A stretch of DNA of 64,000 nucleotides from positions 24,676,001 to 24,740,000 of the forward strand of contig NW_025963879.1 of the NCBI RefSeq assembly GCF_023055435.1, in the 5' to 3' direction. Positions within the stretch are counted from its first letter, which is position 1. The number at the start of each line of letters is the position of its first letter. Source of the stretch: Haliotis rufescens. Taxonomy: Eukaryota. The translations under genes were made by a program, and so were the position numbers. A model generated the notes under the pieces. That model made no database searches and was not told the origin of the DNA. It worked only from the letters and a program-made list of their open reading frames with translations. Positions 17,308 to 57,210 of this stretch are shown here, piece by piece.

Positions 17308-19143
17308 ATGTCTGGTAAGCGCCACAGAATGCCATACGTTGCCAAGGTAACACCACCCAAATTGATGGTGAGTACCTGCCATGCTATGCTGCAGAAGACG
17401 GATCAAGCTTCCAACTCAAGTACCAGCAGTTCTGATGGTGTTCTGCCAACCTACACAGCCCTGTCCTCCAAGAACCACTGTTGTAAGTTGCTGCTGGGAC
17501 TGCAGGACCTCCGAAACAATGAGACTCTGTGTGATTACTCCATCCTGGCTGAAGGGGAGGTGATCCGAGTCCACAAGGCTGTGATGGCAGCCTGCAGTGA
17601 CTACTTCCGGGTCATGCTCTGTGGGGACATGAAAGAGAGCAGGGAGGGGAGTGTAGACTTGAAGGGCGTCACGTCGAATGGGTTGCGGGTGGTCGTAGAA
17701 TTTGCGTACACGGGTCAGCTGGGACTGACAACGGAGAATGTAGAGGATGTTTTGTCAGCAGCCACCCACCTCCAGGTTAGTGATGCCGTGGAGCTGTGCA
17801 GCAAGTACCTGGAGACAGTCATCACAGTGGAGAACTGTGTCGACATTCTAAACCTGTCCGAACTGTACTCCCTATCCTCTATGCATACAAAAGCACAGCA
17901 ATATATGCTAGAAAACTTTGAAATTGTGGCAGAGTCGGAACAGTATTTCAAACTTGCCCATCTTCAACTTGCAGCCATGCTGGCTGAGAATTCCCTCCGA
18001 GTGGTCTCAGAATACTGTCTGTTTGAGTTGGTGTTGATGTGGATTAAGTACAAACCGGAGGAAAGGGAGAAGTATGTGGCCAACTTGATGCGGAATCTGC
18101 GACTGCCGCTGCTCTCAGGGGAAGAGTTGGTCGAAAAAGTGAGTCGAGTGGAGGTGATGAAAAAGAATGCAGAATGCAATGAGCTGCTAACTCAGGCCAA
18201 AGACTACCATATTGTTGTCAGCAAACAGCCTCTACTTCAGTCCAGCCGCACACAAGTCAGGTCAGAGCGGAAGAGTTTGGTTATGTGTCATGCTCAGAAT
18301 CTGGAAAGTTACAATTTCAAGACGAAGCGACAAGGATTTCTAAGAGATGCTACCATACCTCTATATAACCCATGTGTAGTGGTGGTGGACAACTTCATGT
18401 ATGCATGTGGTGGGAAGTATGACAGTACGGAGAACAATGAGATTGCCACTGCCAGATGCTTCAGATATGATCCTCGTTTTGACTTCTGGTACGAGCTCTC
18501 TTCCATGAACGAAGCCAGGAAGGACTTTGTTGTGGTAGCATACAATGGTCAACTGTATGCTATCGCTGGTCAGGATGAGAACATGGTGATGTGCACAGTG
18601 GAGTGTTTCTCCATAGCAAACAATGACTGGGAGATGAGGGCACTGCTCAGTCACTCGGTGTATGGCCATGCAGGGACTCTGTGTCAGGACAAACTCTACA
18701 TCTCAGGGGGGCAGCGTTTCTCTGGCTGTTGTAACAACCTAGCTTGCTACACGCCCGCCAGTGACTCCTGGGAGGAACGAGCGCCGATGATCCACAGCCG
18801 TTGCAACCATGTGATGGTGGAGGTGAAGGACAAGCTGTACGTCATTGGGGGAAACATTGAAGACAGTTACGGCTTTCCCGTTCCAATCATTGCCATTGAA
18901 AGGTACTGTCCTGTGGCCAATCAGTGGACTCTGTGTGAGAGGACGGTCAACATACGAGAGGCTGGGGCTAGCGTCCTTGACAACAAGGTGTACATTGTTG
19001 GTGGCATCAATGGTGAACATTACTATTCAGATCTACTGCAGCTGTATGATCCCATCCTAGATGAGATTACATTGGTAGAGAAATTCCCAACCAGGATCTT
19101 TGGAAAAGCCTGCTCCATTCTGACTCTGCCTCAGTATATATGA
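17308..19143 (+). CDS. Kelch-like protein (BTB-BACK-6xKelch; KLHL26/9/13-like CUL3 adaptor), single coding exon, 611 aa
   Basis: BTB HKAVMAACSDYFRVM, BACK NCVDIL...SEYCLFELVLMWIKY, Kelch repeats with GG..Y..W; acceptor at 17273; in-frame upstream stop at 17299 fixes the start. Confidence 0.95.
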   Translation: MSGKRHRMPYVAKVTPPKLMVSTCHAMLQKTDQASNSSTSSSDGVLPTYTALSSKNHCCKLLLGLQDLRNNETLCDYSILAEGEVIRVHKAVMAACSDYFRVMLCGDMKESREGSVDLKGVTSNGLRVVVEFAYTGQLGLTTENVEDVLSAATHLQVSDAVELCSKYLETVITVENCVDILNLSELYSLSSMHTKAQQYMLENFEIVAESEQYFKLAHLQLAAMLAENSLRVVSEYCLFELVLMWIKYKPEEREKYVANLMRNLRLPLLSGEELVEKVSRVEVMKKNAECNELLTQAKDYHIVVSKQPLLQSSRTQVRSERKSLVMCHAQNLESYNFKTKRQGFLRDATIPLYNPCVVVVDNFMYACGGKYDSTENNEIATARCFRYDPRFDFWYELSSMNEARKDFVVVAYNGQLYAIAGQDENMVMCTVECFSIANNDWEMRALLSHSVYGHAGTLCQDKLYISGGQRFSGCCNNLACYTPASDSWEERAPMIHSRCNHVMVEVKDKLYVIGGNIEDSYGFPVPIIAIERYCPVANQWTLCERTVNIREAGASVLDNKVYIVGGINGEHYYSDLLQLYDPILDEITLVEKFPTRIFGKACSILTLPQYI

Positions 19144-30175: not shown

Positions 30176-30952
30176 TCATTATGTCAAATGGAACTGGATG
30201 TTGAGTGAAGCTCCAGAAAAGCAGCCCCCGGATGAAGCGCGAGAGGGTATGATGTATTTGTCGGAGGAGGAACTCCGAACAGACTTAAGCTTGGACAACA
30301 TCAGTGTTAGGAGTTTCACCGACCCGGACCATTCTAAGATGTATTTGTCGGAGGCGGAACTCCGAACAGACTTGGACAACATCAGTGTTAGGAGTTTCAC
30401 TGACCCGGTCCATTCTGAGATGTATTTAATGGACAGGAATGGTATCGAATTTAGTTTGAATGACATTATCCGTGTGAGAATCGACATGTACGACAGTTAC
30501 GGCAAAAGAAGAACTGTCGGCGGAGACTTTCTCCGGCTGTGGATGGAAGAACCCGGATTAAAAGCCATCGTTTCTGGTGACGCCATCGACCACAATAACG
30601 GAAGTTACACGGGGATATTGAGAGCTTCTTGGACGGGCACGGCATCGATCCTCTGTTTTGTTGACAGGCGTAGAGAGGAGATAGCTCTCCTCTACCGAAA
30701 ATATAACCAATATAACACACTGTGGAATGCGTACGCACAGTTCGCAAGTGGAGCTATGAAAGAAAATACGCTTTGTTTTACGACGCCGCGACCACCACAT
30801 CGCTACTGCAACTACACCGACCACAACGGCGGCCTACCCTACTACTGCCTGCACCCCAACACCCCCGGCTTCACCTGCGCCATGTGGTGGGGTGTGTGGT
30901 CGAGTAGGAGGATAGTACCGATGACGCCTCAAGAGATACTGGTCTTCCAAGG
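30176..30952 (+). CDS. NXPE-family paralog 1, exon 2 (Ig-like/neurexophilin region)
   Basis: YDSYGKRRTVGGDF...DHNNGSYTG motif typical of NXPE; tgcag| acceptor and GG|gtaagc donor. Confidence 0.9.
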
Positions 30953-31575
30953 GTAAGCAACAGATTCAGGATAGTCTCGTTATTTTCAACCCAAACAGTG
31001 AATTTTGTGTAATATATGGTGATAAACAATTAAAGACACCAGGGAGTGTGGACGGGATCGTCCTTCTCCATCACAGTGAGTGAATGAGTATAATTTAATG
31101 CCGCTTTTTGCAATATTCCAGCAAGATTGCTATGAATATTTTACGCGTTCACTAAAGACCTTACGATTTTCCCTGACATGTTACGGATAACTTGTTTTAA
31201 TAAAATACTAGTACCTAAGAGTAATGATTCTTCACTCCATGAACTGAGAATTTATATACAAAAAAAAAAGTATACACCCTTGGTGACTGGCGGCTAAAAT
31301 GAAACAGACACTAAGTGGTTCTTTGATGTCGATGCATCTGATACAAGTAAAATAGTTGTATTTTGGACTTTAAGTTGGAGTGTTTCGGCGAGTGTTTTCA
31401 GTCTAGTAACGTTTGTTTCGGACACATCCAGTGATACTTTTTTTTGCCAGGCATTTTTTCATGACACATGCTATTGATAAGTATGTGAGCTCAATCCAAA
31501 CTGACGGGTTAGGTTATATGTTGAAAGAAGCCGTACATGATGGTTTTGATATTTTTGTTTGAATACTTTGTACAG

Positions 31576-31634
31576 GACCTTTGACAAAAGGAACGACTTA
31601 CTCCCAACTCAAGTGAAGATAAAGATAGCCCCAG
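31576..31634 (+). CDS. NXPE-family paralog 1, exon 3 (59-nt linker)
   Basis: TFDKRNDLLPTQVKIKIAP; required to reconcile phase 2 with phase 1; same length as in paralog 2. Confidence 0.8.
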
Positions 31635-31694
31635 GTATGATCTGAGTTCTTTCCCCTTGCTTTGTCCAGACGATGCCGGGCATGAAAATCTATA

Positions 31695-31881
31695 CAGTAA
31701 ACTACGGTTATTACGAACTCAAAGGGACCACTTATTTTAGTTCGTTTTAACCGTAGTTCGTTATAAGCACATATACAGCATATATATATATATATACAGA
31801 ACACTGAGACGGGACTACAAAATAAGTTCGTTATATCGGTCAGTTCGTTATAAGTGTGTTCGTTATAACCGTAGTTTACTG
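31695..31881. mobile_element. Tigger/pogo-like MITE (cagtaaactacggtta TIR); relatives at about 43899-44055 and 61067-61188
   Basis: TIRs and TA TSD. Confidence 0.82.
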
Positions 31882-33464
31882 TACATGGCTCCGGACCATG
31901 GAATAGAAAGTTATTTTACCGTAGATGGTGTGATAAGGATGCTATGTATCCACAATAAAACATATGACAGATTAAACGTGGCTATTGACAAATACAGGAT
32001 ATGCGGCTCACAATAAATTGGGGAAAGGGAGTTTTTAATTGAACAGCTTGTTCAGAAATATGCCTAAAATTAATAGTTTGTTGCAGTGGAAACACAATTC
32101 ATCGTTTGTTTTGTGGAAAATACTCAAACGTCAAAATTGTTGTGTTAATAGTGTAAATGAATAGATTGTTTGCTGGTGATTAGTAGATAAGTGTGTTGTA
32201 TAAAACTCTGAAAAATAGATTGTTCTCAAACACCTCACCCCCACACAAATCAAATGGATTTTTCCTAGTTGGACTTTTTAATGTTGTTGCATAGGACAAG
32301 CGGTCCCGCAGTACAGAAGCGCATCACCATTCGTCATCACTCGCCCCTTTCCGTAACCTGCAAGAAGACTTGTCCCCTATCGATGAATGTTATGTTCGAA
32401 AATACGACAATCCAATCAGAATGCGCGTATGACTTAAAGTACTTCGGTCAAAGAATCCCTTAGAAATAATTTTGATTTTACATATGTCTTGCATCTAAAA
32501 ATATACCCAAGACACAGGTAAATGTGTTCAGCCATACTGTATAATTCCGCACATCCCAATGTGCTTTAAATTGCATCTGAAATATATATAATATATAGGG
32601 AAATATATGTGAACCATTACGCAACGAGTTGACAATTGTTTTAGGTATGCCCGTTTGCGCTAAGACGGAACCCGGTCGCAAAAATGGCCACGAAAGGGGC
32701 ACTAGTCGCTATTCGGCTTGTAAAATAGATTGTTCTCAAAAACCTCACTCCCACACAAATCAAATGGATTCTCCCTATTTGGACTTTTTGATGTTGTTGC
32801 ATGGGACAAGCAGTCCCGCAGTACAGAAGCACATCACACGACAGAATACATGATGATATTGTTGTTTTATATATTTTTTTCTGATCTAAAACATTTCTTG
32901 TAAACACTTTTAAAAATTCATAAATTTATTACTATATTGTAAATTGCGTAGATATTTAACAGGTCCTGAACACAATGGAACTATTTCGATTTCTCGTCAT
33001 GATATATAATGGACATTAGAAACATAATCTAGATACCTAGAAACATAATCAGGACGAACCGGAATTCGAACCCATGATCATAGGTTTCATAGCAAATTGC
33101 GGCGTCTTAGACGACTGGGTCACCCGTACCGTCATCTTTTCCCTTTCTGTAAAAATGAATTCCAATGTACATCTTAGTAAACATCTTTTTAAATTGTTTA
33201 CATCACTGTCCATAAGATACCACCCCAACAAATATTTTAAAGGATGACTATAATTCTAAAATTGAATGCCCCAATATAGGATACGATGGTCTAAGGCGCC
33301 AAAATTCAAAGTTCAGAGTTGAGGCAGCTTATGCAAGATATAATTGATTTGAATCCAAATATTGATGGTCTGTCAGGGCCATACCCATGCTCGCATCCTA
33401 CGCCTCATATTAAGCTGATACGTTGTGATAACTCGATCTTTACTTGTACTCATTTCTGCTTCAG

Positions 33465-34258
33465 GGACAGACAGTCATCAGGTCAAACTGACCCAGCGGT
33501 CCATCCTATGTAAAGACGTTTCCCCGGCCGCAACATGGCAGAAATTCTCACCCTCTGGGTTCATCTTCATGGGCACGTGGTACCCCCGACTGTGTTCTCT
33601 GGGAATGCCCATCGCTGAGTCGACCTACAGCTCGTGTCTGGCCAACAAGACTCTATGGTTGTCCGGGGATTCCACCAGCATCCAATTTGTGATTCAGCTG
33701 AACAATGTCCTTGGACTGGCACCATTTATTCCCCGAACACACGAACCGAAACGGATCTACCATCGATCTCGGAACTACTCCGTGGCGTGGGCAGCCCACG
33801 GGTTCCCGTACTTCCCAGGGGGGAATGTCCAACATCGCTCCTCCCTCATCCCTCCACAAGCCCAGTTTAAATACACAGCTAACAATTCTCGCGATATATT
33901 TGTGTTGTACCTCAACATTCACCTAATGCTGGTTCACCCCCGTGTCTTTAGGCAGCACGTGCGAATCATGGCTCAAGAGACGTCAACGCTCTTAGCACGT
34001 GCTCCGAACGTCACCGTGGCTGTGAGAGGTCCTCATGCCTTTTATCAACATCCGTATAAGGAAATATATTCATATTGGGGTCTCTTGTTTCGAGACATCA
34101 TCCACGAAGAGTTCCGTCCCAATCGTGATAGAGTTATCTTCCTTGACTACTGGGATATGACCGTTGCCCTTGCGCCGATTGACTTTCATCCTAGGCCTCA
34201 AATTGTACAGATGATGATTCAGAATATGATGGCGTTTGTATGTAGAGATACATCGTGA
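33465..34258 (+). CDS. NXPE-family paralog 1, exon 4 (PC-esterase/SGNH domain); whole protein about 588 aa
   Basis: LWLSGDST nucleophile motif, AHGFP, FLDYWDMT, DFHP near the C-terminus, terminal Cys. Confidence 0.92.
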
Positions 34259-40649: not shown

Positions 40650-41431
40650 TCAGCCGCGACATATGTATCCCATCATGCTCTGCGTCATGGTCCGTACAAT
40701 CGCAGGCGAGGGGTGGAAGTCGGGCAGGCCGAGCGCTACTGACATATCCCAAAAGTCAAGGAAGATAACTCTGTCATACAAGGGACGGAACTCTTCGTGG
40801 AGTATATCTCGGAATACAAGACCCCAGTAGGAATACATTTCTTGATACATTTGTTTGTAATAGGCATGGGGTCCTCTTACTGCTATAACAACATTGGGCG
40901 CCCGTTGTGTGAGAGCTCTGGTTCTTGAGACAAGTTTTTTGATGTGACGTCTGAAAACATCGGGATGGACCAGGATGAAATGTGTGTTTAGGTACAACAC
41001 AATGATATCCCGAGAATCGTTTGGGATTTTATCAAAATGATGTGATTCAGGTTTGATGTAAGCCTTTGGGTAGTGTAAAAGTCCAGGAAAGTACGGAAAT
41101 TCGTGAGCGTTCCAGTGGATGGAATAGTTGTAATGCGGGTGGCGAATGATTTTAGGCTCATGGGTGCGGGTGACGGCAGGAACGACCCTCAAGACGTTGT
41201 TCATCTCCGTCATGATCTGCATGCTCGTCGAGTCGCCGGATATCCACAGACTCCTGTTCTTTAGACATGCGCTGTAGGCGGGTTCCGTGATGGGAACTGT
41301 CATGGCGCACAGTCGGGGAATCCAAGCGCCCTTGTAAAAGAATCCAGAGGGCGCTTCATTCCGCCAGGTGTCGCTAGATGACACGGCCTTGCAGGGGGTC
41401 GTCGAGGAAAGGGCGCTCTGGTTTTCGGGGC
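40650..41431 (-). CDS. NXPE-family paralog 2, exon 4 (PC-esterase domain); whole protein about 545 aa
   Basis: LWISGDST, FLDFWDMS, DFHP; clearly homologous to 33465-34258. Confidence 0.92.
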
Positions 41432-42018
41432 CTGCGGAAGAACATTTTCAATGAGGTTCATATTTTAATACTTAAAAGAAGTTAAAGAACTCCCGATTCT
41501 TCATATTATAAAAATTAATCTGTTGGGCAGTATATAATCGGGAGAGTAAGCACGCGATACATCTAAATGTATTAGAATATGTCTTTGTTTGAGATAAATC
41601 TGTACATAATGACATTATTGTTGCTGTGATCAATCAATCCATTTAATTTTTTCAGAATGTAGGCCTCTCGGGCCTTAGTTTTTAGTACCAGCGCTTTATG
41701 TGATAAATAATACATTATCGTAATTACAAATGCGTGTAAATACCTCTCGGCAGTAATCTGTCCCGAGTGATTACATTACATAGGGTTTAAATTCATAGAT
41801 ACATTTACAAATTCAAGTGGCTTAAAGTGATATCCAGTGTTTGAAACAGCATTCTTGAAAATGAAACAAATTCGTGCTCTGTAAATACATTCAAAAACGT
41901 ATATCTTTCAATTCTAACTTTGGATAAAACTGACATATTAAATCGAATATTTACTGCTGCTGTAAGTCTATGCATAGAATTGTTAAGAACACATGAGAAA
42001 TTGAACTTTTCAAATTAC

Positions 42019-42077
42019 CTCTGGATATATTCACCGATATATTTTGTCTGAATATATCTTTTTCTTTATCAAGCGAC
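42019..42077 (-). CDS. NXPE-family paralog 2, exon 3 (59 nt)
   Basis: SLDKEKDIFRQNISVNISR; AG/GT bounded; phases 2 then 1, as in paralog 1. Confidence 0.8.
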
Positions 42078-42707
42078 CTGAGGATATAAACGTTTTGCAT
42101 ATCATTAACAGCTACACAGTTTATGTAACAGAATCTCCTAATCATCACACCCAAATGAGAGAACCCATTGAATAATATACTGATTAAAGGGAATAAACTT
42201 GTTCGTTTGTTTGTTGTTTAACGCCGCAATCAACAATATTCCAGGTATATGACAGCGGTCTGTGAATCATCGAGTATGTATCAGGCAGTCCAGTGATTGA
42301 CATCATGAGCATGGATCCACGCAATTGGAACACTATGACATGCATCAACCGAGTAAGCGAGTCTGTCTACCCGATCCCGTTAGTCGCCTCTTTCGACAAG
42401 CATGGGTTCCTGAGGACCAATTCTAACCCAAATCTTCAAGGGTGAAAAAAATAAGGGAACATTTTATATTGTTTAAAGGAAACTTTAATGTTGAAGGCAT
42501 CAGTAAAACTCCCATTTGTTGTTTTGAGTTCCGTTATTTGTTTTCATCAGTATACTTCTGACAGTAACTACAGACCATGATGCCCCCATCAGTGCAAAAT
42601 TGATTCCACAATCTGTCTTAAAAAGAGGCGTTTGATGTCTGATTGCAGTTCAAGCAAGATCAATTTCACATTTATTGAAACACACTACTATGTCTATCCA
42701 AAGAGAC

Positions 42708-42870
42708 AGGGGCGGTCGGGTAGCCTAGTGGTTAAAGCCTTCGCTCGTCACGCCGAAGACCCGGGTTCGATTCCCGACATGGGTACAATGTGTGAAGCCC
42801 ATTTCTGGTGTCCCCCGCCGTGATATTGCTGGAATATTGCTAAAAGCGGCGTCAAACCATACTCACTCAC
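42708..42870 (+). mobile_element. SINE A (about 165-bp tRNA-derived); other copies at about 6673-6808, 11270-11368(-), 12460-12606(-), 13708-13850, 19657-19821, 29165-29330(-), 54860-55035(-) and 62862-63030(-)
   Basis: A box tagcctagtgg, B box ggttcgattcc, (actc)n tail; TSD ccaaagagaca. Confidence 0.9.
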
Positions 42871-43093
42871 CCAAAGAGACAAAAAATACTGTCAGTTATT
42901 AACTTCTGAAAATGTTTTTTTTATACGCATTGAAGGGCTGAGGATGTATTTAAAAAGAAATTTACCTGTCTAGTTACACATGTATATAAATAACGTTTTT
43001 ATATATACTATTTCAAGTGATGTTGCTGCGCATATTGCATTTAGTTTAGATTAAAAGACACATTTCTATGAAGCTCCTGGTTCCTTTACTCAC

Positions 43094-43768
43094 AAATCGT
43101 ACACAAGCTTCTCTGCTGGGGACAAGGGTATCCGGCGCCGATATGACCACACGCTGACCACCATGCTACAGTTGAGGTCTGGATGCAAGGGCTGGACACA
43201 GTAGTAAGGCAGGTCACCGTTGTCCGCGGTCAGATTGCAGTACTCAGCTGGGGGCATAGGCCGTGTGAAACATAGTGTTGACTCCACCGCGACGCCATTA
43301 AAGAAGTCTGCGTGCGCATTCCACAGTGTGTCATATTGGTGATATTTCCGGTAAATCAGAGCGATTTCTTCCTTACGTTTTTCAACATAACAGAAAATGG
43401 TTGGCGTCCCAGCCCACGATGCTCTCAAAATGCCGGTGTAACTTCCGTTATTGTGGTCGATGACGTCCCCGGAAACGTTGGCTCTTAATCCGGGCTCTTC
43501 CATCCACAACCGGAAGAAGTCTCCGCCGCTAGTTCGTCTAATTCCGTAACTGTCGTATGTTTCTATTCTGACCTGAATCGTGTCGTTTAAGGAAAACGTT
43601 GTCTGTCCATGAAGGAAGAACCGAGACAACAGTGGATCCGTTACTGTCTTCAGATCTATATCCAATGGATTTCGCAGAATTTCCTCTTCCGACAAGAAGC
43701 GTCTGGGTTCCTCCGTTGACCCAAGGTTGGCGTTAGTCCTCGACCACTGTGTGACCACGAGGTATAAC
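43094..43768 (-). CDS. NXPE-family paralog 2, exon 2
   Basis: YDSYGIRRTSGGDFF...DHNNGSYTG; tttcag| acceptor and TT|gtgagt donor. Confidence 0.9.
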
Positions 43769-45128
43769 CTGAAACATGCACTGATCAACATGTACTGACG
43801 ATCAAGTAGTGTATAAGTTTGGGATCTTGTATGGGGACTAGATATTCTTTAAGGTGTCACATAGACTAACGCTTAGTCTCTGTAACTAGAAACAAATACA
43901 GTAAAATACGTTTATAACGAACACGCTTATAACGAACTGACGGATATTACGAACTTTATTTTTGGTCCCGGCCATTTGCTGTATAGATGTTGTATATATG
44001 CTTATAACGAACTACGGTTATAACGAACTAAAATTTGTGGTCCATTTGATAAACGTGGGGGAAATATAGACTTTTTTAGTCTATAGAATTACAGTAAGAG
44101 CTGGACGAAAGGGAAAATACTATGGTTCAGGGAACATGAGACAGTCTGTATGATTCACATGCTAAAAAACAGACACTTATTTAATTAAACCTATGAGAGT
44201 AAATATTTATTTATAAATGATCTTTATCTTGCCACTGGGTCAAACTGACCTACTACATACATACTACACGTGGTACGTGATTTTAATACGTTTTTATTGA
44301 TATCTGAATTTGACATATCTGATGAGGTATTTTGTGAAGCATGATAAGAGTTAGGTCTTTATGTTTGTATTACATAAGTATGGTCAGTTGACGACCCTCT
44401 TCCCTCCCCCAGTCCTTGAAACACACAAATTCACATGACGCGTAAACAGCTGGTGTAAACAATCAGAAACATACTGACACCACTAATGATAATAATAAGA
44501 CTGAACAGATGTTGATACGACCCCCTGTTTCTACTATAATACCATCTGCAAAAGCAAATAATCAACTGAAAAAAGTGTATAGTTAAAGTCGTGGATGCAG
44601 TCTTGGGTGTAAAGTTGCGCCCCCAGATTCCTCCACATTAATGACCCTCGGTCTTAGAGCACCAAGCCCGTGCACCATTTGGGCTTTTCTTCCACAGTAA
44701 GCCCTGGCACACCATGCTATATCTGTCAAACCCAACTCAGTCACTCACTCTTGCCCGCCCGTGAAGATCCTGGTTAGAATTGGTCTTCAGCAACCCATGC
44801 TTGTCGCAAGAGGCAACCAGCGGGATCGGGTGGTCAGGCTCGCTGACTTGGTTGATGCATGTCATCGTATCCCAATTGCGTGGTTCGATGCTTATGATGC
44901 CAGTCAGTGAATTGTCTCGACCAGGCTTGATTATTTACAGACAGCCGACACATAGCTTAATATTGCTGAGTGCGGCGTTTAAACCCCCACCCCTACCTCC
45001 CAAAAAAACAAAACAAAAAAACAAAAACGAAACATAGAGGTCCATATTTTCAAAAAACACGTTTTTCGTCATACAGTAACATATCTCCTTATGTTGTGTT
45101 GGAACACACTCGGCAAGATGAACCTTAC

Positions 45129-46298: not shown

Positions 46299-47537
46299 AG
46301 CCCATTTGTGGTGTACCCCCGCCGTGATATTGCTGGAATATTGCTAAAAGCGGCGTAAAACCATACTCACTCACTCACGGTCATATAGCCTCGTACGGAA
46401 CAGAGATCAGATTTATCCAGTAATGGTATTTTCCTATGTCGAATGGCTTTGTTCATATTCCATGAAACATATTTTTAAGATGTATATTTGCGACGGGAAT
46501 ATGTCTATAACTATAAACACGACCTCCAAAATAGCTTGACAATCCAGAACACAAATACAGACTCGTCAATCTCTTCTGATTGTTAGCCAATAATCAAATC
46601 AGTGTAAACTCTACATGTCTTAGTGAGTGTGGTTTTACGTGGTGTATGCGACCTGTGAAGATCCGGGGTAGAATAGGTCTTCGCAACCCATTCTTGCTGT
46701 AAAAGGCGACTATGCTTGTCGTAAAAGGGATCGGGTGGTCAGGCTCGCTGACTTGGTTAATGCATGTCATCGATCCCAACTGCGTGGATCGATGCTCATG
46801 ATGTCAATCACTGGATTGTCTGACCCAGACTCGATTATTTACAGACCACCGTCATATAGCTGGAATATTGCTGAGTGCGGCGTTAAACAACAAACAAACA
46901 AACAAACAAAAACAAACGTGGTGTATGCAATATGCCAGTTGTAATAAGGCGGGGGAAACATATTATAAAGAATTAGTGTGTCCAGGTAGGGAATCGAACA
47001 CAAGTCGACACAACCTCAACGCTCTTACCACTAGACTATCCTACATCGCCGATATCAGCATGGCCACGGTACTGTTCGATCAATAAACACCCGCATGCAG
47101 TGATCATTTATAATATCAAATACCATTACCCTGAATAAATAACTCTTTATTGATGAGATGATCCATCCAACTGCATTTGAGCATGGGGAAGTGTTATGAA
47201 CGTGTTTAAGCAGCGGACTCTGGACTTACACACAGCAGGCGTAAATCATAGTTAACATGTCGGTTTTTGTTTAAAATTTTTTGTAAATGTGCAATTGTGT
47301 GAATAAATGTATGGTGTATCGCTTGATTGCCTGGTCTATTTACAGACGCCGTCGCGTGGCAGGAGTAGTGCTGTGCGGCGACAGGCAACAAACACTGCAC
47401 ATTGTGTGAGAGGGTGCTTCATGTAGGGCAGGACAGGCTTCCCCTTTTCGCGAACATCTGGTGTCTTTACTGACTTTCAGTGATCCATTCACATCATTTT
47501 CACAACTATTCGTCTTCTACGCCAAATGGAATTTGTT

Positions 47538-48785
47538 TCCTTGACGGTTTTCACGAACACGATGCGTTGGACGGTTTTCACGAACACGATGCACTAGACT
47601 GTTTTCACGAACATGATGCACTTGAAGGTTTTCACGAACATGATGCACTAGACTGTTTTCACGAACATGATGCACTTGAAGGTTTTCACGAACGTGATGC
47701 ACCAGACTGTTTTCACGAACATAATGCACTTGAAGGTTTTCACGAACGTGATGCACCGGACTGTTTTCACGAACACGATGCACTAGACTGTTTTCACGAA
47801 GATGATGCAGCGGTCTGTTTTCCCGAACACGATGCACTTGAAGGTTTTCAAGAACATGATGCACTAGACTGTTTTCACGAACATGATGCACTAGACTGTT
47901 TTTACAAACACGATGCACTAGACTGTTTTCACGAACATGATGCACCGGACTGTTTTCACGAACATGATGCACTTGAAGGTTTTCACGAACGTGATGCACT
48001 AGACTGTTTTCACGAACATGATGCACTAGACTGTTTTTACAAACATGATGCACTAGACTGTTTTTACAAACACGATGCACTAGACTGTTTTCACGAACAC
48101 GATGCACTAGACTGTCTTTACAAACACGATGCAAAACAAGGTTTTCACGAACATGATGCACTAGACGGTTTTCACGAACATGATGCACTAGAAGGTTTTC
48201 ACGAACATGATGCACTAGACGGTTTTCACGAACATGATGCACTAGAAGGTTTTCACGAACATGATGCACTAGACGGTTTTCACGAACATGATGCACTTGA
48301 AGGTTTTCACGAACATGATGCATTAGACGGTTTTCACGAACACGATGCACTAGACTGTTTTCATGAACATGATGCACCTGACGGTTTTCACGAACACGAT
48401 GCACTAGAAGGTTTTCACGAACATGATGCACTAGACGGTTTTCACGAACACGATGCACTAGACGGTTTTCACGAACACGATGCACTAGACTGTTTTCATG
48501 AACATGATGCACCTGACGGTTTTCACGAACACGATGCACTAGACGGTTTTCACGAACATGATGCACTAGACGGTTTTCACGAACACGATGCACCAGACAG
48601 TTTTCACGACCACATGACGCACAAGACTGTTTTCACGAACAGGATGCACTAGACGGTTTCACGAACACATGATGCACTAGACGGTTTTCACGAACATGAT
48701 GCACTAGACGGTTTTCACGAACATGATGCACCGGACTGTTTTCACGAACACGATGCACTAGAAGGTTTTCATGAACACGAAGCTG
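47538..48785. repeat. 27-bp minisatellite (about 46 copies), open reading frame (FHEHDALDG)n
   Basis: Unit gacggttttcacgaacatgatgcacta with variants. Confidence 0.97.
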
Positions 48786-49622
48786 ACAAAACAAGAATAA
48801 TAATCAGGGCCAATCTGGGATTCGAACTCACGATCATTAGATTTTGGCTGGCCAGTGAGTCGCAATTCTGTAATGGAGAAATACCCCGAATTTACTGATT
48901 CCGGAAGTAGAATGAACCAGCGAACCGGTGATATCTCCGATTTAAATCATGTTTTGGTTGATATATAATTTATCTTTATATATTCCATAATGATCTTTTG
49001 TTGCGTCAATCCTACTTGTTAGAATTAATGTTTAGATTAATGAATTAATGTTTAGATTAATTCATTCTGGCTCAGAATCAAATGCACCAACAATTGCGGG
49101 ACGTCATCGTCATCGTCAAATAAAGCCAGCCCTTCCATTGACAAAAGAACAGTAATTTCTATTGAGGGGCCCTTGCTAAACAGTCTGTCCATAAGCTAAT
49201 GATGCCACTTTGTATTCCTATTTTCCAAATCGTTAAAAATTCATCATTAGGCTTTAAACCGGCGTAGTTCTTCATTTGATCCAAGATCGAAGAAAATGAT
49301 TATGCTTCTGTGCCCAGTCGCAGCTACAGTGTATTGCAATGTTTCCAACACATATACACCCCATTATCATTCGTTCGATAGCAGTGTACACACTTGTATT
49401 GTGTTGGCTTTCAACTCATTAGTTATTTTCAATGTTGAATGTTGACTTTTCACATTTGTGTCTGTCCGATGTCATTACCGGAAAATGACCGTAAAGTAAT
49501 GTAATTGTTTAGCTTGTGATAGCCCCATAGCACTGTACGTTGCCAGGGCAATATCGTTTTTCTCGCAATGATTTACTCACATGACTTCAACAAAGAGTTT
49601 TTTTTGCCACTCGAAGTTCAGC

Positions 49623-50792
49623 ATGGGTGCGTATCGGTTGTGTTTGGCGTTTCTGCTGTGTACGTGTGCCGTCACCGTTATTGGTCATATCAACAACACA
49701 ATGAAGACGGCAATGATAGCCCTACGGGCAGAACTTTTAACGAACCTGGGACCCAATGTACCGCCGATCACATTCGAAGGGAGTGCCATCAAACTCAACT
49801 TCTCCGTCGCGTCGTTACATATAAACGATCTCAACTCTGCGACGGAGACTCTCCATTCAACGGCTCATGTTCTGATGGCCTGGTACGACAAGACTGTCTC
49901 CTGGTCACCTGGCAACCACTCCGGCATCCAACAATTGCAGTTCGACATATCCGAAGTGTGGACGCCCGTCTTGCTGCTTAGCAACTCCGTCGGGAATTCC
50001 GCCACTTTCTCGACCACCGTGCCCATCCTACTGACGGCTGATGGGAAATTCCTGTGGCAGATCCCAGCAACGTGGGCGACAACTTGTACAATCTACATAG
50101 AAAGGTATCCTTTTGACGAACAGTTCTGTGACCTGATGTTCACGAGAGTTGAAGGCTTCCTTCTTGACATCACCGCCAACACCAGCATCGGCCCCAACAC
50201 CGACATCGGCGTTCAGCCTGACACGACTGGTGAATGGGAGTTTCTCAGCGTCTCTTTGGTTACATTTGGAAAGGAAAGGCAACTCCCCGGCGTACACTAT
50301 CGCATTCACATGAAACGGAGGTACCTATTCCACATGCTGAACGTTGTGTTTCCGATGTCTATCCTGTCGTTCACGAGCTCTATGGTGTTCCTATTACCGA
50401 CGAGGTCAGGGGAAAAAATTGGCTTTGTTATGGCTGTGTTTGTGTCTAACGCCCTTTTCCTCACCTACAATCAAGAGTCGATGCCACACACCTCCACCTC
50501 CGTGTCCAGTCTGTCAGTATATCTCACACTCATCCAAATTCAGGAGTTTCTCACCATGTTAGGAACCATCGTTGTGCACATCGTCTATGATCAGCGAATA
50601 GTGAACCAAGAGTTGAAGGTGAAGGTCAACAAAGTAAAGGTAACCCCAGTCGACAGCGACGGCTCAGATCCCAAGAGAAGGTCTTTACGGGATCGATTCC
50701 GAGAGGCCCCAGCTGACCGAAAACTGGACTGCATATTCTTTTGTATATCTTTCTTCTTAGCTCTACTTGCTTACATGACTATCATCTTATAA
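49623..50792 (+). CDS. Divergent nAChR-like Cys-loop ligand-gated ion channel subunit, copy A (intronless CDS; ORF track start is 49581)
   Basis: Signal peptide MGAYRLCLAFLLCTCAVTVIG, WTP loop A, Cys-loop CTIYIERYPFDEQFC, GEW, four TM helices with GEK before M2. ATG 49623 is the start conserved in both copies. Confidence 0.93.
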   Translation: MGAYRLCLAFLLCTCAVTVIGHINNTMKTAMIALRAELLTNLGPNVPPITFEGSAIKLNFSVASLHINDLNSATETLHSTAHVLMAWYDKTVSWSPGNHSGIQQLQFDISEVWTPVLLLSNSVGNSATFSTTVPILLTADGKFLWQIPATWATTCTIYIERYPFDEQFCDLMFTRVEGFLLDITANTSIGPNTDIGVQPDTTGEWEFLSVSLVTFGKERQLPGVHYRIHMKRRYLFHMLNVVFPMSILSFTSSMVFLLPTRSGEKIGFVMAVFVSNALFLTYNQESMPHTSTSVSSLSVYLTLIQIQEFLTMLGTIVVHIVYDQRIVNQELKVKVNKVKVTPVDSDGSDPKRRSLRDRFREAPADRKLDCIFFCISFFLALLAYMTIIL

Positions 50793-51539
50793 CGACGCAA
50801 ATTCAAGGGACAATCAGATGAGAGTTCCCTTTTGGGAAAGTGTATCCATTAAGTGCGAGACTTCTGCTGACCAGTGTCGGCCATACTCGAGTATCCATTC
50901 TATTTAACCTCCACTCTATAATTATAACTTCCCTGGACCCTTTTGCTACAAGCATAATTTCGGACATCAACATCTTTATCGCTCGTATGACCAACTTACC
51001 AAAGTACCCCCCTTCCCCCATCCCAATCCCCCAAGTTAGAAATGTCTAGCATTAGTGAATAGTTCTAGACGTCACATTCGGCATATTGCAACCCTCAGGG
51101 TGTTAGTGGAGCACATGTAGCCATGGTGTGGTATGGTATGGTATGGTATGGTATGGTACGGTATTGTGTGGTACATGTATTTAGGGTTTAGGGGGACTTG
51201 GACCATTAAAGGTTTATTTTCACATCAAATGTCTTTAAAAAGGGCAGAGTGAGAAATGTAAATGACACGATTGACCAATCTGTTTCATGATCTAGTTTAT
51301 ATTTTCAAACAAAATGCCATTACTAATTCATTTCTGAAAAGTCAGAACTCATTCCCTAAAAGAACAGACAAGACAAAAATGATAAAACGTTAAAATGCTT
51401 TAAAATTTAAAACACATTGTATGTCTATATTAGATTTCTGTGATATATCAAAGTTTCCCATTGCAGTCACGAAGTCTTATAATTCCCGCTGAATTGAACC
51501 CAAATTATGTCGGGGTCCAAAAGTGTAATAAGAAAAAAA

Positions 51540-52560
51540 TGAGCTGTCTTTCTCAAATTCTGCACTACTTTAAATTAATCTGATATTATTTTACAGTACA
51601 TAGATTGGAGGCCTATTTATCAATGACACTTCGGTAAGCATTTAACCCACAGTCCTCCTATTGGTTTTTACAGTAGGGCAAATCGTATTCATATGTGGTC
51701 ACTTATCCCAGCATCCCATCCTAAAACATGTCGAAATCTTTCACTTGGTGTCTGAATTCAGATTTCGTTACCTTAAGATATTGCAAGCCCCATTTCCCAA
51801 GTTGGTGCGATACCTCATGAACATGAGCTTGAATATCACACGGAAAATACTTTGACCTCGATAATGTATCCGGTTTTAATATTTCATTAACAATGTCACT
51901 TCGTGAACCATTTATACCAGATACCAGTCAGTAAATATAACTGCCTCGTGGCTATATTCATGAACCCACCCTAAAGCTTGAAGAATAGCTATTGTAGTTC
52001 GGCAGGAAATACTGAGAGATGGTCATTAAGCCTGTACACACTTGAAGTGTACAAATCTGAAATCCAATATGCCCCAGCAGGATGAATTGTTGACGAATCC
52101 TTTGAGGCATCAGTAAACATGTGTGTAAAGTTGGCATAATGTTCAGAAATGATGTCCTGAAAAACTGATTTCATGACATTTGGACTCATTCTTTTGCTAA
52201 TGGTTGAATTGAGATGATAACAAAGCCCTGGTGTCAGAAACAGTCAAGGAGCAGAATCTGCAGGTGCAGAGGAACTGGCACTGTATAACTCCATACTTAG
52301 CCGCAGGTTTCTGAAAGTTCAAACCGAAGGGACCTTGCCATGTGTCCAATCGTGAATCACATTCTCAACATTAACAACATCATTGGCTGAATTATATTTG
52401 GGTTTAGATTCATTTCAGTTTGAGAAAATGTTTGAGACACATGTTCACAACGAAGACCTTGTGGCGTTTCTGCGTGTGCAACCTAGAGAGCTGAAACTGG
52501 GGTAGTTGCAAATGCACCAGTGCAAATTCGCAAAGCCTTTGACTGAATACGGTCAAATTA
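51540..52560 (-). mobile_element. Degenerate RNase H-bearing LINE (I/Nimb group), in duplication unit A
   Basis: HMFTDASK...YRLNDHLSVFPAELQ RNase H motif. Confidence 0.75.
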
Positions 52561-53228
52561 TGATCTATTGTTGCATCAATGTTACTTGTTAAAATGAATG
52601 TTTAGATTAATTACATGTCTGGCTCAGAATGAAGTGCAACAAGAATAGCGTGAAGTCATCGATATGGTTGAGGCACAGATAATTACAGCGACACTGTCGT
52701 AGTCTGACTAGAAAAAACCGATCCCTTCCATTGAACATGGAACAGTAATTTCTATTGAGGAGCCCTTGCTAAACAGTCTGTCCATCAGATAGTGATAACA
52801 CTTTGTATTCCTGTTTTCCAACTCGTTAAAAATGAATGGTCTGGCTTTAAACCGGAGTAGGTCTCCCTTTGTTCCAAGGTCCAAACAAGTGGACACAAAT
52901 GATTATGCTTCAATGCCCAGCAGCAGTTACAGTGTATTGTAATGTTTGCCAACACATAAACATCCCATTATCATTCGTTCGATAGCAGTGCACACACTTG
53001 TATTGCGTTGGCTTTCAACTCATTAGTTATTTCCATACTTGAATGTTGACTTTCCACATTAGTGTCTGTCCGATGTCATTACCGGAAAATGACTCTAAAG
53101 TAATGTAATTGCTTAGCTTGTGATAGCCCCATAGCACTGTACGTTCCCAAGGCAACATATCGTTTTTCTCGCAATGATTTACTCACGTGACTTCAACAAA
53201 GAGGGTTTTTTGCCACTCGAAGTTCAGC

Positions 53229-54398
53229 ATGGGTGCGTATCGGTTGTGTTTGGCGTTCCTGCTGTGTACGTGTGCCGTCACCGTTATTGGTCATATCAAC
53301 AACACAATGAAGACGGCAATGATAGCCCTACGGGCAGAACTTTTAACGAACCTAGGACCCAATGTACCGCCGATCACATTCGAAGGGAGTGCCATCAAAC
53401 TCAACTTCTCCGTCGCGTCGTTACATATAAACGATCTCAACTCTGCGACGGAGACTCTGTATTCAACGGCTTATGTCCTGATGGCCTGGTACGACAAGAC
53501 TGTCTCCTGGTCACCTGGCAACCACTCCGGCATCCAACAAGTGCAGTTCGACATATCCGAAGTGTGGACGCCCGTCTTGCTGCTTAGCAACTCCGTCGGG
53601 AATTCCGCCACTTTCTCGACCACCGTGCCCATCCTACTGACGGCTGATGGGAAATTCCTGTGGCAGATCCCAGCAACGTGGGCGACAACTTGTACAATCT
53701 ACATAGAAAGGTATCCTTTCGACGAACAGTTCTGTGACCTGATGTTCACGAGAGTTGAAGGCTTCCTTCTTGACATCACCGCCAACACCAGCATCGGCCC
53801 CAACACCGACATCGGCGTTCAGCCTGACACGACTGGTGAATGGGAGTTTCTCAGCGTCTCTTTGGTTACATTTGGAAAGGAAAGGCAACTCCCCGGCGTA
53901 CACTATCGCATTCACATGAAACGGAGGTACCTGTTCCACATGCTGAACGTTGTGTTTCCGATGTCTATCCTGTCGTTCACGAGCTCTATGGTGTTCCTAT
54001 TGCCGACGAGGTCAGGGGAAAAAATTGGCTTCGTTATGGCTGTGTTTGTGTCTAACGCCCTTTTCCTCACCTACAATCAAGAGTCGATGCCACACACCTC
54101 CAACTCCGTGTCCAGTCTGTCACTATATCTCACACTCATCCAAGTTCAGGAGTTTCTCACCATGTTAGGAACCATCGTTGTGCACATCGTCTATGATCAG
54201 CGAATAGTGAACCAAGAGTTGAAGGTGAAGGTCAACAAAGTAAAGGTAACTCCAGTCGACAGCGACGTCTCAGATCCCAAGAGAAGGTCTTTAAGGGATC
54301 GATTCCGAGAGGCCCCAGCTGACCGAAAACTGGACTGCATATTCTTTTGTATATCTTTCTTCTTAGCTGTACTTTCTTACATGACTATTATCTTATAA
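53229..54398 (+). CDS. Divergent nAChR-like Cys-loop channel subunit, copy B
   Basis: About 98% identical to copy A. The ORF-track start at 53187 is GTG here, which supports ATG 53229. Confidence 0.93.
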   Translation: MGAYRLCLAFLLCTCAVTVIGHINNTMKTAMIALRAELLTNLGPNVPPITFEGSAIKLNFSVASLHINDLNSATETLYSTAYVLMAWYDKTVSWSPGNHSGIQQVQFDISEVWTPVLLLSNSVGNSATFSTTVPILLTADGKFLWQIPATWATTCTIYIERYPFDEQFCDLMFTRVEGFLLDITANTSIGPNTDIGVQPDTTGEWEFLSVSLVTFGKERQLPGVHYRIHMKRRYLFHMLNVVFPMSILSFTSSMVFLLPTRSGEKIGFVMAVFVSNALFLTYNQESMPHTSNSVSSLSLYLTLIQVQEFLTMLGTIVVHIVYDQRIVNQELKVKVNKVKVTPVDSDVSDPKRRSLRDRFREAPADRKLDCIFFCISFFLAVLSYMTIIL

Positions 54399-54463
54399 CG
54401 ACGCAAATGCAAGGGACGGCATGTTGCAGCTTTTCCCAGAGTGTTAGTGGAGCACATGTAGCC

Positions 54464-54615
54464 ATGGTTTGGTATGGTACGGTATGGTATGGTATGGTAT
54501 GGTATGGTATGGTACAATACGGTATGGTATGGTATGGAATGGTATGGTACGGTACGGTACGGTACGCTACGGTACGGTATGGTATAGTACGGTATGGTAC
54601 GGTACGGTACGGTAC
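54464..54615. repeat. (TATGG/TACGG)n microsatellite; shorter counterpart at 51123-51175
   Basis: Direct reading. Confidence 0.95.
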
Positions 54616-55399
54616 CATTAAAGGTCTATTTGCACATCAAATGTCTTTAAACAAGGGCAGAGTGAGACATGTAAGTGACACGATTGACCAATCTGTTTCA
54701 TGATCTACTTCATATTTTCAAACCACATGTTATCACTAATTCATTTCTGAAAGGTCAGAACTCCCTAAATTCCCTAAAAGAACAGATAAGACAAAAAAGG
54801 AAAATCGTTAAAATGGTTTAAAATTTAATACACATTGTATGTCCAAATGAGATTTCTATGAGTGAGTGAGTCAGTGAGTAAGTATGGTTTTACGCGGCTT
54901 TTAGCAATATTCCAGCAATATCCTGGCGGGGGACACCAGAAATGGGCTTCACACATAGTACCCATGTCGGGAATCGAACCCGGGTCTTCGGCGTGACGAG
55001 CCAAAGCTTTAACCACTAGGCTACCCGGCCGCCCCAGGTTTCTATGATATATCAAAGTATCCTATTGCAGTCATGAAGCCTAAGGCGCCGCGATTCGCTG
55101 TGCAGAGTTGCGTTCCTTTGGCACGCCAGAAACCTATGATTGTGAGTTCGAATCCCGGTTCGCCCCGATTATGTTTCCAGGTTTGTCAGCACCATACCCG
55201 TGCTCGTGTGTTTCACCGAAGTGGTAAACGTCTGAGACCTGCATCACTTCGGGCTTTCCTCCCACAGTAAGCTGACACGCCGTGATATAACTGGAATACT
55301 GTTAAAAGCGGCGTTAAACCCAACTCACCCACTCACTCACGAAGTCTAATAATTACCGCTGAATTGAACCCAAGTTATGTCGGGGTCCAAAAGTGTAAT

Positions 55400-57210
55400 T
55401 AGAGAAATATGAGCTGTCTTTCTCAAGTTCTACACTACTTAAATTAAATCTGATATTATTTCACAGTCTCGGGAGTATTTTTCACCACAGTGAGTACATA
55501 GATTGGAGGCTTATTTATCAATGACACTTCGGTAAGCATTTAACCCACAGTCCTCAAGAAGAAGTCCAGTAATTATTACGTCCTTGCGTTTCTTTTACCG
55601 ATGGATTTTCCTATTGGTTTTTACAGTAGGGCAAATAGTATTCATATGTGGTCACTTATCCGAGCATCCCATTCTAAAACATGTCGAAATCTTTTACTTG
55701 GGGTCTGAATTTAGATTTCGTTACCTCAAGATATTGCAAGCCACATTTCCCAGTTTGGTGTGTCACCTCATTTCCATGCAACCAAACATGAGCTTGAATA
55801 TCACACGGAATATACTTAAGCTCGATAATGTATCGGTTTTTTATATCTCATTAATAATGTCACTTCGTGAACCTTTAATACCAGATTCAATTGCCTTAAC
55901 AGCTGCAATGGAGTCAGTAAATATAATTGCCTCGTGGCTATATTCATTAACCCACCCTAAAGCTTGAAGAATAGCTATTGTTGTTTAGCAGCAAATACTG
56001 AGAGGTGGTCATTAAGCCTGTACACACTTGAAGTGTGAAAATCTGAAATCCTGTATGCCCCAGAAGTATGACGAATCCTTTGAGGCATAAGTAAACATGT
56101 GTGTAAAGTTAGCATAGTGTTCAGCAATGATGTCCTGAAATACTGATTTGATGACATTTAGATTCTTTTGCTAATGGTTGAATTGAGATGATAACAAAGC
56201 CCTGGTGTCCGCAGCAGTCAAGGAGCAGAATCTGCAGGTGGAGAGGAACTGGCACTGTATTACTCCATTCTTAGCCGCAGGTTTCTGAAAGTTCCAACCG
56301 ATAAGACCTTGCCATGTGTCCAATCGTGAATCACATTCTCAACATTAACAACATCATTGGCTGAATTATATTTGGGTTTAGATTTATTTCAGTTTGAGAA
56401 AATATTTGAGACACAAGTTCACGACGAAGACGTTGTGGCCTTTCTGCGTGTTCAACCAAGAGAGCTGAAACTGGGGTAGTTGCAAAGCCTTTGACTGAAT
56501 GCGGTCAAATTAAGAAGGATGTCATTTTGAGGCAGACATAAATACCGCCAAAGTCAATTCTTGATACTATTAATGCTTTATATAGCGATAACACTGAGGA
56601 TATACCAGCACTCCACTTCCTTTTGGCAATGCATTTCATTAGATTATAATCGTATTACATTTGTCACAACATGAAATATGTGAGAACCCCGCGTTAATCT
56701 CTGATCGAAATAAACACCAAAAACTTAAACTCCCTTACAATTTCTATTTTGTGTCACCAACAGTCAGCTCTATAACTGAAGGAATTCTACGTCCGGTTAT
56801 CATAAACATGATTGGACTGAGAAATCTTTAAGCCACACTTAGGACACCACACAATGATGATATCTAACCATTTCTGAATTGATTCAGTGACAAACTTGAA
56901 ATTTTCAAAGCGTCTCCAAAATTGTCCATTCTGAACTGCAAACTATGCTGCATGTATATTTAATGGTAAGTCTGTGGAAAAAGTTATTTATCATAATATT
57001 TATTGCACTACCTTGTGGGGTACCATTTTCAATCAAATGTATACCAGTAAAGTCCTGTCCAATGCAAACTTGAATAGACCTTTGAAGAAAACCCGAGTGA
57101 ATCCATGTTGCCTTTTATCCCCAGATTCTGTAATTTGAATAGAAGTCTATTGCCTCCAGGTCATATCGTATGGTTTCTCAATATCGAAGACCAACAGCAT
57201 GTACCCTCTA
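55400..57210 (-). mobile_element. Same LINE relic in unit B, extending further into the RT region
   Basis: Homologous to 51540-52560; continues with GVPQG and FDIEKPYD-like RT remnants. Confidence 0.75.

Follow-up and report, generated by a model that had tools for sequence, protein, structure and literature searches.

We analysed a tandem pair of single-exon genes in a 64-kb stretch of the red abalone (Haliotis rufescens) genome (contig NW_025963879.1, positions 24,676,001 to 24,740,000 of the forward strand; hereafter the window, in which all coordinates are counted). Both genes encode nicotinic acetylcholine receptor (nAChR)-derived Cys-loop channel subunits with four membrane helices. Neither the vicinal Cys-Cys of loop C nor any of the five aromatic residues that canonically contact acetylcholine is present, and loops B and C are shortened; judged by its residues, the pair cannot bind acetylcholine in the canonical manner. 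We favour, with a probability of about 60%, the reading that these are functional orphan nAChR-derived cation-channel subunits, for which the gating ligand would not be acetylcholine. Genes of this kind have been published before, as a molluscan expansion, and the pair is a further annotated case.

The gene pair and its fold

The features of the two genes, with the evidence for each in brackets, are as follows.

49623..50792, + strand: copy 1, single open reading frame (ORF) of an nAChR-like (Cys-loop/pentameric) channel subunit gene, 389 aa, stop included (ORFs, Pfam, PDB, AlphaFold/Foldseek, public protein P0001)
49623..49685, + strand: hydrophobic N-terminal leader of copy 1, residues 1-21, a putative signal peptide MGAYRLCLAFLLCTCAVTVIG (predicted from the sequence)
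49686..50321, + strand: extracellular ligand-binding domain (LBD) of copy 1, residues 22-233 (Pfam stretch 35-233, motifs, alignment)
49866-49868, + strand: loop D residue H82 of copy 1
49959-49988, + strand: loop A of copy 1
50085-50129, + strand: Cys-loop of copy 1, C155-C169
50136-50156, + strand: loop B of copy 1
50262-50291, + strand: loop C of copy 1
50322..50588, + strand: helices M1-M3 of copy 1, residues 234-322 (AlphaFold helices, M2 alignment)
50406-50486, + strand: M2 of copy 1 (Glu -1', Val 9', Glu 20')
50589..50789, + strand: short intracellular loop of copy 1, about 40 aa (residues 323-365), followed by M4 (366-389) (AlphaFold, alignment)
53229..54398, + strand: copy 2, paralog of copy 1, 389 aa (ORF, protein alignment, nucleotide comparison)

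An earlier note, made from the letters alone, had described two intact, intronless 389-aa channel ORFs in tandem at 49623-50792 and 53229-54398; the ORFs, the Pfam matches and the single-exon coding sequences bear this out, coordinates included. The full ORFs extend slightly further upstream on the + strand (49581-50792 and 53187-54398), with an in-frame start before the Met that is ATG in copy 1 and GTG in copy 2. The true start is taken to be the Met at 49623 and 53229 (MGAYRL...), because the orthologs in Haliotis rubra and the public 389-aa protein P0001, which is identical to the copy 1 ORF, begin there. The canonical subunits in our alignment likewise start with a variable leader. The two proteins agree at 380 of 389 positions (98%) with no gaps, and the coding DNA differs at 20 of 1170 nt (1.7%), nine of the differences being nonsynonymous and 11 synonymous. 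A protein-against-DNA search (tblastn) of the 64-kb window matched the two copies alone, with no third copy found. Each receptor gene is also overlapped in its 5' part by a 137-aa ORF read in a different frame (49568-49981 and 53174-53587, + strand); this ORF is probably not a gene, and conserved through the DNA duplication alone.

Assignment to the Cys-loop family was made by profile and by structure. Pfam matched Neur_chan_LBD at E 1e-27 (97.5 bits against a gathering cut-off of 26) and Neur_chan_memb at E 1e-7 (32.6 bits against 28.1). The nearest solved relatives in the PDB were muscle nAChR beta1 and alpha7 (E 1e-33 to 1e-31), muscle beta1 being the single best. An AlphaFold model built from 43 family members, with a mean predicted local distance difference test (pLDDT) score of 80, shows a beta-sandwich followed by helices at residues 234-257, 264-286, 296-338 and 364-388. 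When searched with Foldseek, the model matched alpha7 first and then muscle nAChR chains, with template modelling (TM) scores of about 0.74, and the ESM Atlas returned generic nAChR-like clusters only.

Binding site and pore residues

For comparison with both copies and three orthologs, four alpha-type subunits that carry the Cys-Cys, including two of the alpha7-like type, were taken from an exhaustive protein search and placed in one alignment. The motifs of copy 1 lie at residues 113-122 (WTPVLLLSNS), 172-178 (MFTRVEG), 214-223 (TFGKERQLPG) and 262-265 (SGEK), and the comparison gave the following.

Loop D: canonical TNxW; STAH in copy 1 and STAY in copy 2 (Trp replaced by His or Tyr)
Loop A: canonical WxPDILLYN; WTPVLLLSN in the pair (Asp replaced by Val, Tyr by Ser)
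Loop B: canonical KFGSWTY; MFTR--VEG in the pair (two-residue deletion, without the Trp)
Loop C: canonical YxCCxEPYPD; K-----ERQLPG in the pair (five-residue deletion, without Cys-Cys and without Tyr)
Cys-loop: canonical C-x13-C; retained in the pair as C155-x13-C169 and invariant in the alignment
Pre-M1 Arg and M2-M3 Pro: both retained in the pair
M2: canonical Glu -1', Leu 9', Glu 20'; Glu -1', Val 9', Glu 20' in the pair
M3-M4 loop: canonical 100-150 aa; about 40 aa in the pair

Every motif quoted in the earlier note for a perfect Cys-loop beside a missing acetylcholine pocket (loops A, B and C) was thus recovered by alignment, and its description of the pore, with GEK, Val at 9' and a very short M3-M4 loop, stood up against the canonical subunits. 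At the canonical contact positions of an alpha-type acetylcholine-binding subunit, the pair has Ser, a deletion, a deletion and Leu. Neither does it have the make-up of a complementary subunit of the beta2/beta4 type, with His or Tyr in loop D, a single ORF and an intracellular loop of about 40 aa.

Orthologs and rates of change

Orthologs of the pair were identified in H. rubra (two intact copies that share a contig) and in H. asinina (one protein, largely intact). Between the red abalone protein and these three orthologs, identity is 70-74% over the LBD and 87-89% over M1-M3, the LBD changing faster than the pore. The position of the loop D Trp is variable, being occupied across the five proteins of the orthogroup by H, Y, C, C and I, and two of the nine amino-acid differences between the window copies (H78Y and H82Y) fall in the loop D strand. 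Between copies 1 and 2, the synonymous divergence (dS) is 0.041 and the ratio of nonsynonymous to synonymous divergence (dN/dS) is about 0.25, a value resting on only 20 differences. This pattern fits a pore that would be held constant while the ligand face is free to change; such a face might reflect a ligand specificity that shifts or, if it has fallen out of use, a relaxation of constraint.

The family in the abalone genome and its phylogeny

A genome-wide count of paralogs, which the earlier note had proposed, was made by a six-frame search of the whole H. rufescens assembly. It yielded 106 scored matches among 338 candidates, all 106 of which were aligned. The genome therefore holds at least 106 single-ORF paralogs of about 320-560 aa, arranged in tandem arrays on many scaffolds and free of internal stops in every one of the 106. 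Their diagnostic residues are distributed as follows, among the 106 scored paralogs.

Loop C Cys-Cys: 0/106
Loop A Tyr: 0/106
Loop B Trp: 37/106
Loop D Trp: 31/106
Glu at -1': 100/106
Val at 9': 45/106
C-x13-C Cys-loop: 101/106

As neither the Cys-Cys nor the loop A Tyr occurs in any scored paralog, loss of the acetylcholine residues of the principal face is a trait of the whole expansion. On these counts the pair is not special within its own genome, and Val at 9' is common to nearly half of the family.

Most of the nearest paralogs (36-39% identity) form an array of six intact genes and one truncated gene (L003-L008 and L015, at G000:C101:10-60 kb); the array shares the 25.7-Mb scaffold of the pair but lies some 24.6 Mb from it, at the other end. 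One more member of this subclade (L009) is found on a different scaffold (C556). Several public gene models of 800-1470 aa (P0015-P0018, P0022, P0030 and P0031) contain 2-5 nAChR-like stretches each; these are probably adjoining array members fused by automatic annotation.

Beyond the abalone genome, an exhaustive protein search with HMMER returned 6712 proteins at E < 1e-3. The sole cluster above 50% identity was the H. rubra ortholog (78%), and the next single-domain matches were Haliotis paralogs, 34-41% identical; outside the orthogroup, none of the 6712 proteins exceeded about 41% identity. Word-based protein searches gave 11 proteins for the single protein and 13 for a family alignment of 43 rows, the named ones all from Haliotis. 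Automated NCBI names are of the form "beta-like" or "delta-like".

A tree of 104 rows was built with IQ-TREE, with seven alpha-type representatives that bear the Cys-Cys as its root; it contains neither labelled beta-type subunits nor cephalopod chemotactile receptors (CRs). The window copies join with a Shimodaira-Hasegawa-like approximate likelihood ratio test (SH-aLRT) support of 96, and together with the two H. rubra proteins and the one from H. asinina they form a group at 100, on a long stem of 0.93 changes per site. This orthogroup falls within a clade of 18 rows (99), 17 of them named and every one of these from Haliotis, and that clade is nested in a 42-row clade (99), in which each named row comes from a gastropod (Gigantopelta, Littorina, Batillaria, Babylonia, Bulinus, Candidula or Haliotis). 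Sequences from Argopecten (a scallop) and a tardigrade, together with two from Patella and one from Physella, lie outside the 42-row clade. The clade holding the pair is marked in M2 by 8'Phe and 9'Val (MAVFVS / SIFVS). In the tree, the pair lies far from the Cys-Cys-bearing alpha-type rows. The proposal that these genes form a separate gastropod family is borne out only in that the named members of the wider clade are all gastropods; the pair is not a family of its own, but a small orthogroup, known on these searches from Haliotis only, within a family of at least 106 genes.

Comparison with known systems

Massive, largely intronless, tandem expansions of molluscan nAChR genes have been described by Jiao et al. 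(2019, BMC Genomics; PMC6896357), who attributed them to retroposition and tandem duplication and suggested stress, immune and developmental roles. By the criteria of that study the pair belongs to the molluscan intronless nAChR expansion: the abalone family is single-exon, tandem and nAChR-derived, its paralogs cluster by lineage, and it exceeds 100 genes per genome. The published account is centred on bivalves, describes gastropods as less expanded and does not mention Haliotis (PMC6896357), whereas at least 106 such genes are present here in a gastropod and the orthogroup of the pair is so far known only in Haliotis. More recently, a 2026 preprint has classified 3,586 molluscan nAChR-family sequences into clades that include one of cephalopod CRs and another, named "CR-like", that extends to gastropods, bivalves and chitons (PMC13174522). 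Its authors report substitutions of binding residues in the divergent clades and put forward an ionotropic chemosensory contribution as a hypothesis (PMC13174522).

The cephalopod chemotactile receptors (CR518/CRT1 and CRB1; PDB 8eis, 9e6b and 8eiz) are nAChR-derived with a cation-type GEK, as is the pair; CR518 has Leu at 9' where the pair has Val. A kinship with these receptors, to which the earlier note had compared the pair, did not emerge from the score comparisons. In the PDB search with the single protein, CRs scored 82 bits against 118 for canonical nAChRs. With the family profile, alpha7 was the best match at 311 bits and no CR appeared among the 60 best matches, the last of which was a 5-HT3A chain at 249 bits, so that CRs rank below 5-HT3A. 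Over M1-M3, moreover, alpha7 is more similar to the pair than CR518 is. Two likenesses point the other way: CR chains are the only PDB chains that align with the pair protein through M4, and the M2 of octopus CR518 shares 8'Phe, 10'Ser, 11'Asn and 13'Leu with the pair, where alpha7 has Leu, Ser, Leu and Val. We treat the M2 and M4 likeness as a lead that may be worth following, and not as evidence of kinship.

Canonical alpha7 remains the closest fold, with the same Cys-loop, M1-M4 layout and GEK ring; unlike alpha7, the pair is without YxCC, the loop A Tyr, the loop B Trp and the loop D Trp; it is encoded by a single exon, carries Val at 9' and has some 40 aa in its intracellular loop. Alpo4, from the annelid Alvinella pompejana, is likewise an nAChR-like subunit of a lophotrochozoan that has no Cys-Cys in loop C, although from a different phylum than abalone. 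It gives no response to acetylcholine or serotonin, and screening with more than 30 ligands left it an orphan (eLife 2023; PMC10338036), showing that receptors without the Cys-Cys tip can resist ligand identification. By its published description it retains an aromatic cage (W159, F103 and W197; PMC10338036), which sets it apart from the pair.

Function of the pair and alternative explanations

Taken together, the genes are real and intact, and encode what are probably functional channel subunits. In the mechanism we propose, the subunits would assemble as homopentamers, or as heteropentamers with paralogs, and would pass cations once the remodelled interface between subunits, a short one with some charge (KER at the tip of loop C), is occupied by a ligand that is not acetylcholine. 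Several observations weigh against this. In true acetylcholine receptors, accessory subunits of the non-alpha type likewise do without these residues, and the best PDB match is muscle beta1. The gene is absent from all sequencing runs on record as RNA, and few differences stand behind the dN/dS ratio. Low-depth contigs do occur in four small runs guessed to be RNA, one of them 1036 nt long, 97% identical and wholly inside the copy 2 coding sequence; we rejected them as evidence of transcription, since other contig pieces from the same four runs lie on intergenic DNA (50897-51711 and 52398-52924), and they may be low-coverage genomic DNA.

The same features could be read in a more specific way, as those of chemosensory receptors in sensory epithelia (tentacles, epipodium or larval apical organ) that would be gated by environmental molecules and be analogous or homologous to the cephalopod CRs. 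The pair has several CR hallmarks, in that the genes have one exon each and are arrayed in tandem, the acetylcholine pocket is lost and the M3-M4 loop is short, to which may be added the M2 residues shared with CR518, the alignment of CR chains alone through M4, the fast-changing LBD with its variable loop D position, and the gastropod-reaching "CR-like" clade of the preprint with its ionotropic chemosensory hypothesis (PMC13174522). Against this, the sequence is more distant from CRs than from canonical nAChRs by bit score, by profile and over M1-M3, the charged KER tip of loop C differs from the hydrophobic CR pocket of published accounts, and no run recorded as RNA holds the gene. We therefore regard this explanation as unlikely, and its extension to the 8'Phe/9'Val gastropod clade at large is equally doubtful, in which the whole clade would be ionotropic environmental chemoreceptors, converted independently of the cephalopod CRs or sharing a retrogene ancestor with them. 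Were some of these channels chemoreceptors, gastropods would gain an ionotropic family of taste or smell receptors beside their G protein-coupled receptors, the octopus-type transition from neurotransmitter receptor to sensor would be older or repeated, and there would be a bearing on the settlement and feeding cues of abalone.

Less probable still is that the pair supplies accessory non-alpha subunits to acetylcholine-gated heteromers, co-assembling with canonical abalone alpha subunits and modifying how these behave, in the manner of muscle beta1 or vertebrate alpha5/beta3. Muscle beta1, the best PDB match, is itself non-canonical at its loop A, B and D positions, the GEK ring and the gating elements of the pair are conserved, and the automated names are "beta-like" or "delta-like". 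However, the gene sits deep in a lineage-specific intronless expansion, far from the alpha-type rows with Cys-Cys, and a family of more than 100 genes exceeds any accessory need; its intracellular loop is very short compared with the long canonical M3-M4 region, and the exhaustive protein search gave no bilaterian-wide ortholog. That the genes are silent or decaying retrocopies without function appears very improbable. The lack of the gene from runs recorded as RNA would agree with decay, as would the loop D position that varies among the five orthogroup proteins and the loss of the conserved Asp of WxPD. Decay is difficult to reconcile, however, with two open frames of 389 codons, with orthologs that are intact in H. 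rubra and largely so in H. asinina, with a pore conserved at 87-89% across species against 70-74% for the LBD, with a dN/dS of 0.25, or with open frames in all 106 scored paralogs. Orphan cation-channel subunits with a ligand other than acetylcholine thus remain our preferred reading.

Age of the duplication

The extent of the duplicated segment was determined by self-BLAST and by an identity profile along the two units, both on the + strand.

48991..52560, + strand: tandem duplication unit 1, about 3.57 kb (self-BLAST, identity profile)
52561..56512, + strand: tandem duplication unit 2, about 3.95 kb, with extra insertions and a microsatellite 3' of the stop (self-BLAST, identity profile)
48991-49109 and 52561-52670: dispersed repeat of about 110 nt opening each unit, with at least 33 genome copies at 71-84% identity

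Identity between unit 1 and unit 2 varies along their length.

Repeat that opens the unit (first ~100 nt): 72%
Upstream of the coding sequence: 78-84%, rising to 95%
Coding sequence: 97-99% by profile (98.3% overall)
Alignable parts 3' of the stop: 86-95%, with large indels

The dispersed repeat may be either part of the duplicated segment or the mark of a breakpoint. Position 52560 at the end of unit 1 is equated with 56512 at the end of unit 2, because a public contig on the unit 1 tail continues into 56513-56542. A single copy in another species, as a loose contig ending at 52560 might suggest, was rejected, the contig being the paralogous tail of unit 2. Duplication of haplotypes in the assembly was likewise rejected as an artefact, given flanks with large indels and 5-28% divergence, and given the two copies in H. 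rubra.

Because the flanks are only 72-95% identical while the coding sequences reach 98.3%, and because H. rubra also has two copies, 90% identical to each other, we favour an older duplication followed by gene conversion. The simplest reading of these identities is an older tandem duplication whose coding part would have been homogenised by gene conversion under purifying selection; the pair would then be an old tandem duplicate with coding sequences kept alike. A fresh duplication of the pair is less likely. Independent recent duplications in each species may instead have occurred. The suggestion that the genes are still duplicating is consequently doubtful for this pair, with flanks that differ by 5-28% against 1.7% in the coding sequence and two copies in H. 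rubra as well. With coding sequences 98% identical and flanks far more diverged, the pair offers a clear small example of concerted evolution.

Two tracts of simple repeats lie close to the genes. A microsatellite of the GGTAT/GGTAC type follows directly on the copy 2 stop (54460-54700), is absent after copy 1 and gives rise to a spurious 118-aa ORF of WYGMV repeats. About 1 kb upstream of copy 1, a minisatellite with at least 38 copies of a 27-bp unit (47432-48652) yields spurious ORFs of 390 aa (+) and 358 aa (-), built of nine-residue repeats (HEHDALDGF...).

Other genes in the window

17308-19143, + strand: single-ORF 611-aa BTB-BACK-Kelch (KLHL-type) gene (Pfam BTB 8e-27, BACK 2e-23, Kelch_1 6e-36)
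30198-34258, + strand, and 40650-43791, - strand: two convergent paralogous NXPE-family genes

Each of the NXPE-family genes shows up as two exon-like ORFs, of which one is weakly Neurexophilin-like and the other matches NXPE4_C (E 1e-37 to 4e-39).

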